Part shown: positions 4,614-35,674 of the stretch, piece by piece
Numbering within the stretch: the stretch's first letter is position 1
Layout: the number at the start of each line of letters is the position of its first letter
Assembly: GCA_040285825.1 (NCBI GenBank)
Contig: JAUPSS010000003.1
Location: forward strand, 930,001-994,000
Direction: 5' to 3'
Length of the DNA: 64,000 nt
Source of the DNA: Eukaryota sp. TZLM1-RC
Taxonomy: Eukaryota > Protista > Metamonada: BaSk clade
Program-made: the position numbers and the translations under genes
The notes under the pieces: model-generated
What the model was told of the DNA's origin: nothing
Seen by the model: the letters and a program-made list of their open reading frames with translations, nothing else
Database searches by the model: none

Positions 4614-5303
4614 GGGGCAATTTCACAATGTCACTTTTCCAACACACAAGTTTCACAAATGTCACTTTCTTGTGTCTTAGTTTCATAAATATCAGTATCA
4701 GACAATCAGTATCAGACAACCCCATTGTCCTTAGAGTCGATGATGACTTTCAATCTATGAAAGTTCTACGACAGACCATACAATTGTTTCGCTTTCTGTG
4801 TAAGACACTTAGCGGACAATTTAACAAAGAAGTGTCGGAAGAAGAAGCTTATCGGAGTTGTTTGGGAAGCTGCCAAAGCAGTAACAGCTGAAGACTTTAA
4901 CAATGCTATGAATGTTATCATGAGTATTTCACTCAAGGCCTACAACTTTCTGCAAGCGGTTGGTGTGGAGAATTGGAGCAGTTATATGTTCAAAGGACAG
5001 ACCTACGGACATGTGACCAGTAATGTCGCAGAGTCTCTCAATAGTTGGATGAAGTCACTGAGAGGACTACCAATTGTTGTCATGTTGGAAGTTTATAGAA
5101 GGAAATTAATGGATTGGTTTATTGCAAGACATGAACAGTCCCAAGTCTATCTAAGAAAGAACATGTTGATTGTACCAGCAATTGATATCCAGTAGATGAC
5201 CATTTGAAAATAGAATAAAACTGATATTTATGAAACTAAGACACAAGAAAGTGACATTTGTGAAACTTGTGTGTTGGAAAAGTGATATTTGTGAAATTAA
5301 CCC
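4614..5303 (+). mobile_element. Non-autonomous Mutator (MULE) element with ~85-bp TIRs and 9-bp TSD
   Basis: TIRs GGGGCAATTTCAC.../...GTGAAATTAACCC; TSD TTTAAAAAA at 4605-4613 and 5304-5312. Internal transposase remnant FLCKHL-like and YGHVTSNVAESLNSW (4908-5195). Confidence 0.92.
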
Positions 5304-31929: not shown

Positions 31930-32177
31930 GCAGAGAACTCAGATAGAAAGCATGGTAGTAGGTGGTCGTATATGGATGTCATTGACTACTCCAGTGCAAC
32001 TTTTACAAAGGATACCTAGTTTATGAACCTAGTTTATGAAGTGAGGGGAAAGTGTGGGAATAGTGAAAACCTCCCAAAACCAAGTTGAGGGTTAAAAACC
32101 TCCCAGAATAGGCAACCAGAAGTCGAAAATGGGTGACAAGTGTAAAATTTGATAGATGAGCTCTTTATTCTCACTAC

Positions 32178-34133
32178 ATGTCAGACACCCCCTCTGTATC
32201 ACGTGTATTCACTCGGTCTTGTGCACTTAACTCGCTGCTGACCCCTGCAGCGGTGCAACAAATTCGGACTGACCTTCCAGTGGTCACCGAGATTTGTCAT
32301 GAAGCTTCTTTGTTACTTCAATCTTTTCTTCTAAATTTTCCGTTGGCATCTAGAGCTTTAGTGGAACAGGATGTATGGTATCTGTTTATGACCGTCATCA
32401 CCACTGGTTCTTTTCCTAAGCCTTCCACATCTAAAGGCCAACGCCAATTACTCCATATCTTTTACAATGGATTTCTTCCTGAATGCCCACAAGACAGGTC
32501 TCTTGTTTCTGTGTGGGAAAATTCTTTAGTGCCTTACAGAAATTCATTCAATCTTTTCCTCAATGATTGGCTGCAGTCCCAGAACTGTAATTTTATCAAT
32601 AGAAAAGGGCTTTCTTCTTATCTTGCTTGTCGGGCTCGTCAATTGGCCTCCAACGTTAAGACATGTTTACCCAAAATTTGTCAATCCTGGACAAAAAACT
32701 TTATTCGTGCTCATTGTAGAGCCCTGAATAAAACAAATGTCTTTGCAAATAATATTCTTTCACTTTTGCCAGATGAACTACTAGCCGAACCCGAGGAAGT
32801 AGTAGTTGATTCTGTTCTTGAATACCTCATCAATTTCAATTTGAATAATTCAAGAGAAAGATTTTTTTTATTGAATGCATGTAGGTTTATCTTGAATCTC
32901 CTCCAAAGATTTCCTACCACTGCCTCCCTACTGTCCTCACATGATAAAATCACTTTTTCATCAAAGGAAATTGGTGAGCTTTTTCTCTTCAATCTTAAAA
33001 TTTCACAATACTTACTCACTTTCTTTTCTCATATGCATTGCTGGAAGAAATTCAGAATAATACCTTTAGCTTCTCATAAAGGTTCTAAATTTATTGAGGT
33101 ACCTTCACAAATTTTCCACTCTGTGAAAAAATTTCCAATTATTGAAGGATCATCTTCCAAAACAAAGTTTATCAAAAATACATGTCTGAAACGAATATTC
33201 AAACAATGTCCTTTCCAAAAATTCAATATCAACAGAAAAAGTTTGAAAAATAGATTTAACAAAATTTTATTGAAAACTAATGGTAATGAACTGCTTTTGA
33301 CCTTTGAAGGTAAAAATAATGACTCAGAAAACACAGATGAGCTGGATGAACCACCGAAAAAGAAAAGAAGATCAAAAAATGAAATGAAAAGTGACCCTAA
33401 TGCCAACAAAACCAGAGAAACACAGTTGAAGGGTACTAAAAAAATGCCCCGTCGAAGACGTAGACATCCAGTCGAAATTTTACCTGAAAGCCCCCTTATT
33501 GGTGTTGATCTTGGCCAATCAAGATTATGTGGTTACTTTTTAAATGATAATCAATGTGGAGTTATCCCTTGTCCAACTGGCAGAAGATACATGACAAAAC
33601 CTTCACCCAGTAAACACTCTCCCAACCAATATTCCGTTCAAAATTTCAACCAATATTTGAACCATTGGAATTTGGTCAGGAGGAAAGTGTATTTGGAAAG
33701 TAATCGCCAGAAATGGAAAATAATTAAATTTGATAACCGCAGACGAAAAGAGAGACGGTTCAGAGAGAGTCTCAACAAATTTCAAAGGCTGGCTGGACAT
33801 CCTGAAAAACTCTATCTTGCTGTGGGTTCTGCTAATTTCCCTTCTCATTGCCGAAAAGTCAATCGATATGGATCAGCAAGGGCTTTCAGAAAATGGTTGT
33901 GTTATCAAAAGGACGTGAAGCACTTGTCAACCAGTGAATTTAATACAAGCAAAATGTCAAGTTGTTGCATGGCCGAGAATATTCAAGCAGGCTCATGGCA
34001 GATGCGTATTTGTACTGAGTGTCAAATAGTATATGACAGAGATATTTCCGCTGCAAAAAATATTCAAATTAAGAAGAAAGCGGAATTGTGGCCGGAAAGA
34101 TACATTTGCCCAGATGCTCTGTTGAGAAGATGA
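32178..34133 (+). CDS. Intact Fanzor1 (eukaryotic TnpB-like RNA-guided RuvC nuclease), locus B
   Basis: 651 aa: N-terminal CALNSLL, FRIIPL..KFIE, KTNG, NLS-like PPKKKRR, RuvC-I IGVDLG, RuvC-II SEFNTSK, Zn ligands SCC..CTEC, RuvC-III DRDISAAKNI. Confidence 0.9.
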   Translation: MSDTPSVSRVFTRSCALNSLLTPAAVQQIRTDLPVVTEICHEASLLLQSFLLNFPLASRALVEQDVWYLFMTVITTGSFPKPSTSKGQRQLLHIFYNGFLPECPQDRSLVSVWENSLVPYRNSFNLFLNDWLQSQNCNFINRKGLSSYLACRARQLASNVKTCLPKICQSWTKNFIRAHCRALNKTNVFANNILSLLPDELLAEPEEVVVDSVLEYLINFNLNNSRERFFLLNACRFILNLLQRFPTTASLLSSHDKITFSSKEIGELFLFNLKISQYLLTFFSHMHCWKKFRIIPLASHKGSKFIEVPSQIFHSVKKFPIIEGSSSKTKFIKNTCLKRIFKQCPFQKFNINRKSLKNRFNKILLKTNGNELLLTFEGKNNDSENTDELDEPPKKKRRSKNEMKSDPNANKTRETQLKGTKKMPRRRRRHPVEILPESPLIGVDLGQSRLCGYFLNDNQCGVIPCPTGRRYMTKPSPSKHSPNQYSVQNFNQYLNHWNLVRRKVYLESNRQKWKIIKFDNRRRKERRFRESLNKFQRLAGHPEKLYLAVGSANFPSHCRKVNRYGSARAFRKWLCYQKDVKHLSTSEFNTSKMSSCCMAENIQAGSWQMRICTECQIVYDRDISAAKNIQIKKKAELWPERYICPDALLRR

Positions 34134-34404
34134 ATGGGGAACCTGAGCATACAGAAACAAAATCTTTTGAGACCGATCTACAAATGCCTTAGTAGCATTT
34201 GGTAGATCCACTTAGATACATCAAGTCGCGAGGCTTTGTTCTGTGAAAGCAGTAGGTGTATTTAAGTGAGGTAGCCCATTGATGAAGATCATGATTGTCT
34301 TTGTCAAATGATGCTACATGTCTCTTACAGCCTGTGAGTAGACATTGAGAAAGTTGAAAACAGGAGTGAATTTCACAGGGGAATGCATGATAAGTGAAAT
34401 TCAC
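34131..34404 (+). ncRNA. Candidate omega-RNA of Fanzor locus B
   Basis: Closing stem 34133-34144/34269-34280; hairpin 34175-34208; 14-bp stem 34209-34222/34255-34268 enclosing GCGA- and GUGA-loop hairpins; further hairpins 34280-34306, 34318-34345 and 34366-34404. Confidence 0.72.
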
Positions 34405-34408
34405 AGTA

Positions 34409-35674
34409 ATGATCCGACAACTCTTCAATGATGCTTTACACTCGGACAATTTCAGGATCGTCTTCGAGAATGAAACATTTTATGTAAAACCTACGTTCTT
34501 CCAGGATTGCACTTTATTGCACAACGTTCCAGCGGAATATAATGGCTTTGACGTTACTGAATATGATATCACGAGCGAAACCCTACAGGTATTCCTTCAG
34601 TGGTATTATGAGTTTCCTGCTCCAATCTTCACGGAGACTAATATATATTACTACTGGAATATCGCACTTCTGTTTGGTTCTACTCGACTTCTTACCCTCT
34701 GTACTTCACTCATCAAAGAGAATTACTCTTCATTGATATCCCTTATAGAGGATGTCAGTGTTGCCAACAATAAGGACACATTCCTATCCGTTATGCAGAG
34801 TATTTCCGAGATAAACACTTTACATCCAAACTCTTTATTCACTTACATTAATCAAGATTTCCTTCCTTTAGTGGAACCATACATAAATACAGAGAACCAA
34901 GCACTTTGGATCTTTGAGTGTATGTTTTCCCACATAGAAGAGTATCATTTAGAATCCCTTAAAACACAAATGTGGTCACTGCCCTTCAAACAACTATCAT
35001 TGACCAATTTGTTCTACATCTGCAAAAGGTTTACAGAATTTTCAAATTTAGTTGATGTAACTCTTGAAGTCCTAGAGCATTATCTTGGGCGGGTCTCAAA
35101 TGTTGATTGTTGGAAAGGAGTAGATTCTAATGGTTTACTTGGTATCATTACCTCCACTTCTGAAAGCCACTCCCTTGTGAAGTTTCTTTTTAATTTCGAC
35201 AGTTTAGACAGTGTGATTCTCCTTTTTCCTCCCCATTTTCAAACCATATTCAATATTCCAAACATCCACAAACATCATTTTTACCTCTTCCAGTGTTTAG
35301 TACACTCGTTCACAGAAGATCCTACTCGATGGACAAGTGAGGATGTGGAATTTGTACTTGATAAACTGAATGTTGGTGATGATTCACAACATCTGTGGAA
35401 GGAACAACTCATATATTTAGAGGAATATCACCAGCTGAAAGAGGTTGTACAGAATTTTATGGAGAGTAAACTTAAAATATTCAATGAAAATACAACTGAA
35501 AGGACAATAAGAAAGGTTCAGAAAGCGAAAAACCTTAAGCAACGAACAGATCATTATCGTGGGTATCAACTTGATCCAAAAGAAGATATTCCCAAAATAG
35601 CTAGCCAACGTTTGATGAAGAGAAGAGCTTATCACAGACCAATATTGCAACATGTGAAGAAGTTGCGAAGATAA
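34409..35674 (+). CDS. BTB/POZ-domain protein
   Basis: LFNDALHSD.FRIVFENETFYV..ETLQVFLQWYY..TETNIYYYWNIALLFGSTRLLTLC; basic C-terminus; ATG at 34409. Confidence 0.7.
   Translation: MIRQLFNDALHSDNFRIVFENETFYVKPTFFQDCTLLHNVPAEYNGFDVTEYDITSETLQVFLQWYYEFPAPIFTETNIYYYWNIALLFGSTRLLTLCTSLIKENYSSLISLIEDVSVANNKDTFLSVMQSISEINTLHPNSLFTYINQDFLPLVEPYINTENQALWIFECMFSHIEEYHLESLKTQMWSLPFKQLSLTNLFYICKRFTEFSNLVDVTLEVLEHYLGRVSNVDCWKGVDSNGLLGIITSTSESHSLVKFLFNFDSLDSVILLFPPHFQTIFNIPNIHKHHFYLFQCLVHSFTEDPTRWTSEDVEFVLDKLNVGDDSQHLWKEQLIYLEEYHQLKEVVQNFMESKLKIFNENTTERTIRKVQKAKNLKQRTDHYRGYQLDPKEDIPKIASQRLMKRRAYHRPILQHVKKLRR

Follow-up and report, generated by a model that had tools for sequence, protein, structure and literature searches.

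A probable Fanzor transposon family with an omega-RNA-like 3′ region in the metamonad Skoliomonas

The 64,000-nucleotide stretch of DNA analysed here (the window) comprises positions 930,001 to 994,000 of contig JAUPSS010000003.1 in the assembly GCA_040285825.1 of the metamonad Eukaryota sp. TZLM1-RC. It carries a repeat unit of about 2.4 kb (32026/32029-34408) in which the gene for a 651-amino-acid (aa) nuclease is followed by a conserved, structured non-coding region. In all likelihood the unit is a copy of a divergent, Skoliomonas-restricted Fanzor transposon family with an omega-RNA-like tail; the family adds a new lineage to a known kind of element and does not represent a new type of system. 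The initial annotation of this DNA had proposed a Fanzor/TnpB-type RuvC nuclease followed on the same strand by a conserved omega-RNA-like region, and that proposal is supported, now with a sharply defined element end. The genome paper lists Skoliomonas litria, S. sp. GEM-RC and S. sp. TZLM3-RCL as skoliomonads, free-living anaerobic metamonads of soda lakes (10.1101/2023.05.03.539051); by elimination among them, we take the strain label TZLM1-RC to denote S. litria. The relatives discussed below come from the assemblies GEM-RC1 and TZLM3-RCL (RCL).

The open reading frame (ORF) has no internal stops and contains all the motifs for which it was first singled out, namely GVDLG, SEFNTS, DRDISA and the basic patch PPKKKRR, which resembles a nuclear localisation signal (NLS) and would be expected to direct nuclear import. 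The 651-aa protein is a member of the TnpB/Cas12/Fanzor superfamily. The superfamily motif of Bao and Jurka (2013), D-X(125,275)-[TS][TS]-X-X-[C4 zinc finger]-X(5,50)-RD in the C-terminal half (PMC3627910), is found as D444, 145 intervening residues, T590 and S591, a K and an M, the zinc ribbon and, five residues past C615, R621 and D622; the sole departure is a serine at the first Cys position, with C596 and C597 adjacent. These residues (D444, T590, S591, C596, C597, C612, C615, R621 and D622), together with E587, are invariant or nearly so across the family, and the stretch DRDISAAKNI aligns with the DRDTNAARNI motif of Cas12m4a. An alternative glutamate six residues upstream of the zinc finger has been described as a mark of Fanzors and their bacterial precursors (Yoon et al. 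2023, PMC10711439), and E587 lies six residues ahead of position 594, where the first zinc-finger cysteine is expected. The zinc ligands noted at the outset are indeed present as C596, C597, C612 and C615, but they do not form a canonical CxxC...CxxC finger: the first pair reads S594-S-C596-C597 (SSCC), so that the second cysteine alone occupies its canonical position, with 14 residues leading on to C612-x-x-C615. At the first canonical position the window copy has a serine and no family member in the alignment has a cysteine, the xxCC form being family-wide.

Profile and structure searches, which the initial annotation had named as a check, returned RuvC/Cas12-like matches by Pfam, PDB profile, Foldseek and VIA. 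PF07282 (Cas12f1-like TNB / OrfB zinc ribbon) matches the window protein at 28.2 bits, above its gathering cutoff of 26.3, and nine of the ten family members (best E 9.3e-11), while NCBIfam TnpB models match four to seven of the ten at sub-threshold scores. A profile of the family searched against the PDB retrieves Cas12m4a (E 3.8e-7), TranC (2e-4), the 'Transposase' 8HR5 (CnCas12f1; 2.4e-4), ISDra2 TnpB (5e-3) and SpuFz1 (0.045). A model of residues 288-651 presents three strands, two long helices, a strand, a helix, a strand, the zinc ribbon and a final helix, which is the RuvC order, and it supports with moderate confidence a RuvC fold interrupted by a zinc ribbon. With this C-terminal model, the first 29 Foldseek matches are all Cas12f, Cas12e, Cas12g, TnpB or Fanzor proteins (best E 7.8e-4), and the top VIA-align match is SpuFz1 (8gkh_P; Z 10.9, root-mean-square deviation 3.4 Å over 161 residues). 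The N-terminal ~430 aa have no sequence homology detected outside Skoliomonas.

Selection on the protein is purifying: the ratio of non-synonymous to synonymous substitution (dN/dS) is 0.12 against the GEM-RC1 orthologue, a comparison in which synonymous sites are saturated (pS 0.735), and 0.25 against the intact paralog at locus L007. With intact catalytic residues and purifying selection, it is plausible that the window nuclease is active. Taken together, length, a carrier with terminal inverted repeats (TIRs) and TA flanks, the structural match to SpuFz1 and the alternative glutamate make Fanzor1 a probable label.

The limits of the element have been drawn from its repetition in the genome. 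In blastn alignments with seven further S. litria copies, the similarity begins at 32026-32029 (CTAGTTTATGAAGTGAGGGG...), extends to 34403-34411 and amounts to 87-98% identity. Most copies run to ...GTGAAATTCACAGTA (window 34408), beyond which the flanks are unrelated, and GEM-RC1 copies end with the same ATGAAATTCACAGTA; the repeat unit therefore extends past 34404, where the initial annotation had placed its end. There are exceptions: the right end is mutated in L003, five bases short in L007 and altered in its last base in L008, and L004 stops at a similar TTCACAG (34378). Short-read contigs have loose ends at 34378, 34395, 34405 and 34408 on the right (two samples), and on the left at 31998 and, in two samples, at 32025. 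Should the final TA be a target-site duplication, 34406 would be the last position of the element proper.

It is in a GEM-RC1 relative that both ends can be seen. The GEM-RC1 unit is 3.44 kb long; its ORF is preceded by 1.2 kb of non-coding DNA, and an ORF for a transposase is absent. At exactly the unit ends of the copy L009 there is a 36-nt inverted repeat (75% complementarity) with a perfect 13-nt terminal core, TACTGTGAATTTC / GAAATTCACAGTA, and TA stands at both outer ends of the core and may represent a target-site duplication. The features of a eukaryotic-type DNA transposon carrier (TIRs, TA) are thus displayed by L009, S. litria showing the right repeat only. The earlier statement that TIRs are lacking holds for the left side of the window copy, but not for its right side, where GAAATTCACAGTA occupies 34396-34408, nor for the GEM-RC1 relatives, which have both repeats. 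Neither a serine recombinase ORF nor a transposase is present in the unit, and a search for gapless inverted repeats in the long copies L007 and L008 detected none at the termini. Since the window copy keeps the right repeat alone, it can probably not move by cut-and-paste as a unit, even if the gene and the RNA both look functional; that the elements are mobilised in trans is plausible.

The left side of the unit is more variable. The leader ahead of the ORF presumably holds the promoter and the 5′-untranslated region. The window and L002 share a further 89 nt on the left, from 31909, and L003 and L004 share another ~105 nt at their left ends; these pieces may be alternative 5′ modules or may result from element insertion into other repeats. 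A ~1-kb repeat, shared by L007, L008 and in part by L001, lies directly upstream of these three Fanzor copies (L001 2843-3699, L007 2024-2850, L008 1803-2850), and its L001 copy overlaps a gene model on the minus strand that has a PF04457 (MJ1316) domain. This repeat may be a 5′ module belonging to a long form of the element, or else a favoured target of insertion. Within 32014-32107 there are a 13-nt tandem duplication (ACCTAGTTTATGA twice), two occurrences of AAAACCTCCCA and a complementary pair CCTCCC / GAGGG(T), all kept in every S. litria copy except for the first copy of the duplication; they may be part of the promoter or of a leader structure. In one short-read contig, 31904 is followed directly by 32046, so that 141 nt of the left junction are missing, with 30 nt matched on the far side; this contig may stem from the duplicated locus or a repeat path in the assembly graph.

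The 3′ non-coding part of the unit has the properties of a structured RNA. The 279 nt from the stop codon to 34409 fold at -85.4 kcal/mol against a shuffle mean of -64.5 (z -4.35), and none of 200 dinucleotide shuffles folds as well. The GEM-RC1 orthologue on its own folds into the same architecture (-87.7 kcal/mol, z -4.9). The conserved structured region spans 34166-34408, about 243 of the 275 nt past the stop codon, and the scaffold is placed to start near 34166 because the first ~32 nt are unconserved and carry a 58-nt insertion in L003. The folded RNA initially described as beginning at the stop codon is thus real in its stability but not in its starting point, 34134-34165 being unconserved. 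The closed multibranch domain is likewise not the one drawn before (34133-34280): both species share 34169-34324 instead. Its closing stem (34169-34173 with 34320-34324) encloses three arms, of which the first is a hairpin at 34175-34208, the second a 14-bp stem (34209-34222 with 34255-34268) from which two small hairpins arise, their loops being GCGA and GAAA, and the third a long hairpin at 34271-34317. The GNRA-capped hairpins and the many G-U stems of the earlier description are present.

Comparison of the copies supports these pairings. The RNAalifold consensus of ten copies of two species comprises 71 pairs, and standard pairs occupy 98.7% of cells, compared with 36-43% when partners are slid by one to three columns. 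All 14 stem pairs that differ between the species stay paired. Five changes are compensatory: four pairs are altered on both sides, and a fifth such change is found in the terminal hairpin, where a C-G pair next to the loop in S. litria corresponds to U-A in GEM-RC1. No shuffle attains the observed covariation score, a weak statistic with two species. The check by folding and covariation envisaged in the initial annotation has therefore come out in favour, with the limited weight that two species allow. A covariance model of the core recovers all ten copies of the two species at 151-194 bits, and Rfam contains no family matching the scaffold. In the third species, about 110 nt (4780-4890) separate the RCL homologue P0055 from the next gene at locus L011, and the stretch after the stop codon opens with TTTTGGACCGATC, like the start of the S. 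litria scaffold, TTTGAGACCGATC. As a scaffold homologue, the L011 TTTTGGACCGATC was rejected, being unsupported by the covariance model.

A conserved, structured region on the strand of the ORF, lying 3′ of it and ending at the right end of the element, is what is expected of an OMEGA system, and the region fits an omega-RNA scaffold. Several observations nevertheless count against the assignment of the unit to a Fanzor family with such a tail. In the definition of Yoon et al. (2023), Fanzors also have DPG at RuvC-I and a zinc finger of the form CxxC x(12,18) CxxC (PMC10711439). RuvC-I reads DLG in the window and GEM-RC1 copies (among RCL homologues, DPG in P0038 and P0043 and DPN in P0055 and P0057), and the first zinc-finger cysteine is absent. 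The full-length AlphaFold2 model, built on a 10-sequence alignment, has a predicted local distance difference test (pLDDT) score of 42.8 and is unusable, and that of residues 288-651 is of moderate quality (pLDDT 53, core 70-86); in the VIA list, generic RuvC-like domains (Tex, Spt6, RuvX) follow SpuFz1 by less than 1 Z. A search for the exact left terminal repeat motif found it neither upstream in the window nor at any S. litria locus. As regards the RNA, the evidence (structure, conservation, covariation and strand asymmetry) is entirely of DNA sequence, the covariation comes essentially from one species contrast (S. litria against GEM-RC1) plus paralog noise, and the core covariance model, run with filters off on three RCL loci, found nothing better than E 0.23.

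The best-placed alternative sees in the 3′ region a DNA-level cis element (subterminal transposase-binding sites and a terminal repeat) or an ordinary 3′-untranslated region, its folds being incidental. The terminal hairpin can be accommodated in this way, its 3′ arm being the terminal repeat and its 5′ arm an internal inverted copy, as for repeated transposase-binding sites. The conservation cannot be accommodated so easily, since it extends over ~240 nt, compared with a repeat of 13-36 nt, and exceeds that of the coding sequence: the 3′ non-coding region is 76% nucleotide-identical between species, with long invariant blocks, and the ORF 62%. Folding is ambivalent at first sight, because the minus strand also beats its own shuffles (z -3.12); yet the plus strand is 18 kcal/mol more stable, and many stem pairs are G-U, which are possible on the ORF strand only. 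Every stem change between the species keeps its pairing, five through compensatory pairs, and position and strand are those at which Fanzor/TnpB omega-RNAs lie (PMC10432273). The pattern is hard to explain by transposase-binding DNA alone, and a cis element or plain untranslated region is regarded as unlikely. More improbable still is that the gene now serves the host as a domesticated nuclease with a single function, or is a dead relic that merely looks intact, outside any working RNA-guided mobile system: although the window copy has no left terminal repeat or transposase, most family members are broken and the zinc-finger and DLG deviations could impair function, the unit is repeated at 97-98% identity at many loci with different right flanks and is therefore not a fixed single host locus, at least two intact 651-aa copies show the constraint given above both between them and across species, and the deviating zinc finger is kept family-wide and in the unrelated GC-rich homologue P0059, which makes it a stable variant and not decay. 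The suggestion of domestication in the initial annotation is excluded, since the unit occurs as a repeat in high copy number, its right flanks being unrelated from copy to copy and many of the copies decayed.

Under the Fanzor reading, the position of the right end has a direct bearing on the guide. In Fanzor/TnpB systems, the guide follows the scaffold and is taken from flanking sequence (Saito et al. 2023, PMC10432273). No nucleotide separates the end of the element (34408) from the start codon of the downstream gene (ATG at 34409); by analogy, 34409..34430 would act as the guide. By the same analogy with characterised OMEGA systems, the scaffold would be transcribed with the nuclease mRNA, or processed from its 3′ end, and would read through the element end, its own 3′ end carrying about 20 nt of flanking host sequence as the guide, in this case the first codons of the adjacent gene. 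The nuclease-RNA complex would then cut the matching element-free site beside a short motif, which would favour retention or copying of the element, and movement itself would probably depend on a transposase supplied in trans that recognises the terminal inverted repeats.

The downstream host gene (34409-35674, plus strand) encodes 421 aa, and its product has no Pfam domain at E <= 0.05. The deposited annotation uses the ATG at 34409, because the 421-aa protein is in the public collection letter for letter. Its paralog P0113 (locus tag P9112_004512) is identical at 420 of the 421 positions and lies on the same 3.7-Mb contig, so the region was duplicated very recently; the P9112_004512 locus could reveal whether the insertion site there is empty or filled. 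A Fanzor-omega-RNA-BTB cassette was considered and rejected, as the similarity of the copies stops at 34408, the downstream sequence of each copy differs and Pfam finds no BTB domain (E <= 0.1).

In four of ten loci (the window, L003, L004 and L010), a co-oriented annotated start follows the right end at a distance of 0-63 nt. In another five the right end is more than 500 nt from a start or faces the other way, and L005 has no called downstream gene; as a raw count from a small sample of ten loci, adjacency to start codons is frequent and not universal. It is a tentative and rather doubtful idea that Skoliomonas Fanzors preferentially sit with the right end abutting the start codons of host genes that run in the same direction, the guide being the first codons and the element a leader. 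Were it true, it would be a new relation between an RNA-guided transposon and host gene starts that goes beyond passive survival in short intergenic spaces, and the placement may reflect targeted homing to the 5′ ends of genes or co-option of the element as promoter or leader.

Table 1. Coordinates of the Fanzor unit and its parts in the window.
Feature	Position	Strand	Basis and remarks
31-nt left extension	31998..32028	+	Alignment; only in window, L001 and L002; repeats first ~13 nt of core (ACCTAGTTTATGA x2)
Core left end and 5′ non-coding leader	32029..32177	+	Starts CTAGTTTATGAAGTGAGGGG; common to all 7 S. litria copies examined
Nuclease ORF	32178..34133	+	651 aa, no internal stops; C-terminal ~220 aa are RuvC + TNB
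NLS-like patch PPKKKRR, aa 392-398	33351..33371	+	Kept in GEM-RC1 and RCL homologues (alignment)
Second basic run KKMPRRRRRH, aa 421-430	33438-33467	+	Sequence
RuvC-I aspartate D444 in GVDLG (aa 442-446)	33507..33509	+	Invariant column; first strand of modelled RuvC-like sheet
RuvC-II 'alternative' glutamate E587 in SEFNTS (586-591)	33936..33938	+	Invariant in one family alignment, nearly so in second
Variant zinc ribbon (TNB), SSCC...CTEC: C596, C597, C612, C615	33957..34022	+	PF07282; Cys invariant in one family alignment
RuvC-III aspartate D622 in DRDISAAKNI (620-629)	34041..34043	+	R621 and D622 invariant
A-rich spacer, stop codon to scaffold	34134..34165	+	Not alignable between species; 58-nt insertion there in L003
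Predicted scaffold core	34166..34327	+	RNAalifold consensus, ten copies
CCUG/CAGG stem, 34331-34334 with 34361-34364	34331..34364	+	S. litria loop has 20 nt missing from GEM-RC1 copies
Terminal hairpin, 11-bp perfect stem GTGAATTTCAC / GTGAAATTCAC	34366..34404	+	Repeat search in both species; 3′ arm within right terminal repeat
Right terminal repeat GAAATTCACAGTA	34396..34408	+	Copies diverge beyond; reverse complement is left end of GEM-RC1 copy L009
Predicted guide	34409..34430	+	Read-through from scaffold; first codons (ATG ATC CGA ...) of downstream host gene

The distribution of the family has been surveyed at several levels. A single-sequence search of 1.84 billion representative proteins gave 29 matches to the 651-aa protein, most of them full-length or fragmentary homologues, and all homologues traced to their source come from the TZLM1-RC, GEM-RC1 and TZLM3-RCL assemblies; the weaker matches, which include P0043, P0057 and P0059, fall outside this source-traced set. 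Profile and region searches of 5.8 billion proteins found no relative outside Skoliomonas, and pattern scans of viral and metagenome contigs gave no relative that was borne out by tblastn. Within S. litria the family is large: more than 150 gene fragments, mostly broken, are annotated, and a profile search lists more than 70 clusters at 90% identity, one of 82 members and another of 27, nearly all being fragments of 80-400 aa. The intact 651-aa copies in S. litria are that of the window and P0012 at L007; the copy at L001 is frameshifted, and its annotation carries artificial introns.

Further traces of Fanzor-like sequence have been observed. The minus strand of the window carries, at 312-1639, a decayed member of another, distant Fanzor family, which aligns with the 651-aa protein at 23% identity along 387 aa (tblastn E 4e-8) and has at least one frameshift; its motifs AIDPNHSNLCG, FDFFIRKQKRF and GDEYMTSAKVNCC resemble those of the RCL proteins P0055 and P0057. 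S. litria therefore holds at least two divergent Fanzor families. In the GEM-RC1 protein P0058 (563 aa), about 70 residues of the Fanzor middle region are fused to a long leucine-rich (RNI-like) repeat protein; the gene model is probably a chimera that arose by annotation through a fragment of the element. Elsewhere in the window there is a U2 spliceosomal RNA gene at 2610-2766 on the plus strand (Rfam RF00004, 90.8 bits against a gathering cutoff of 46). About 2 kb upstream of the Fanzor unit, a plus-strand ORF at 29376-30191 matches the endonuclease/exonuclease/phosphatase domain weakly (PF03372, at 23.0 bits slightly below the 24.5-bit cutoff) and is possibly the remnant of a retrotransposon endonuclease of the long interspersed nuclear element (LINE) type.

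These observations extend Fanzor elements to the Metamonada, and as far as the searchable literature shows this is the first metamonad lineage, the library that was searched containing no paper that pairs 'Fanzor' with 'Metamonada'. A large expansion (more than 150 fragments) in a compact protist genome, together with a right end at a start codon, bears on the coexistence of elements with dense genomes. The protein is recognisable by sequence in its last ~60-160 residues only, and nonetheless the catalytic triad, purifying selection and a defined candidate RNA scaffold have been kept. The intact 651-aa gene and a scaffold of ~243 nt, bounded by ten copies from two species, are ready to be tested for expression and cleavage and may amount to a new compact editor whose REC architecture is different.

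Among known systems, the nearest ESM Atlas clusters by language-model features are giant-virus proteins with PF07282 and DUF8286 (PF26935). These Fanzor clusters of the Nucleocytoviricota score 0.97-0.98 and comprise proteins of 625-800 aa, and PF26935 has no match in the Skoliomonas family members at E <= 1; a giant-virus relationship is a lead. With bacterial TnpB of the IS200/IS605 and IS607 elements (ISDra2 TnpB 8H1J, 8EXA), the protein shares the RuvC fold, the zinc-ribbon insertion and the D-E-D triad, and the system shares a (here predicted) right-end guide RNA on the gene strand with flanking DNA as the guide; the similarity is detected by PDB profile (E 5e-3), Foldseek (E 4e-3) and the NCBIfam TnpB models. 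Unlike bacterial TnpB, the 651-aa protein is ~240 residues longer, has its glutamate in the alternative position and bears NLS-like patches. The carriers differ as well: IS200/IS605 and IS607 elements have neither TIRs nor target-site duplications (PMC3627910), whereas the Skoliomonas carrier has inverted repeats with TA flanks and is without TnpA.

SPu-1 of Spizellomyces punctatus is the archetypal Fanzor1 element, with a single 633-aa ORF, 33-bp TIRs and putative TA duplications (Bao and Jurka 2013, PMC3627910). The Skoliomonas elements differ from its SpuFz1 system in that sequence similarity is limited to ~60-160 C-terminal residues (profile E 0.045) and the N-terminal ~430 aa are unrecognisable, in that RuvC-I is DLG rather than DPG and the first zinc-finger pair xxCC rather than CxxC, and in that the scaffold has no detectable relation to a known RNA family and the host is a metamonad. 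Copy numbers also diverge, SPu-1 having 17 full-length copies and the Skoliomonas family more than 150 annotated fragments. What the two have in common is a single ORF for a nuclease of ~630-650 aa, TIRs flanked by TA at either end and the lack of a transposase (observed here in the GEM-RC1 relatives), an omega-RNA (here predicted) at the 3′ end that runs into the right end, and a RuvC/TNB half for which SpuFz1 (8GKH, 9CEU-9CEZ) is the best structural match.

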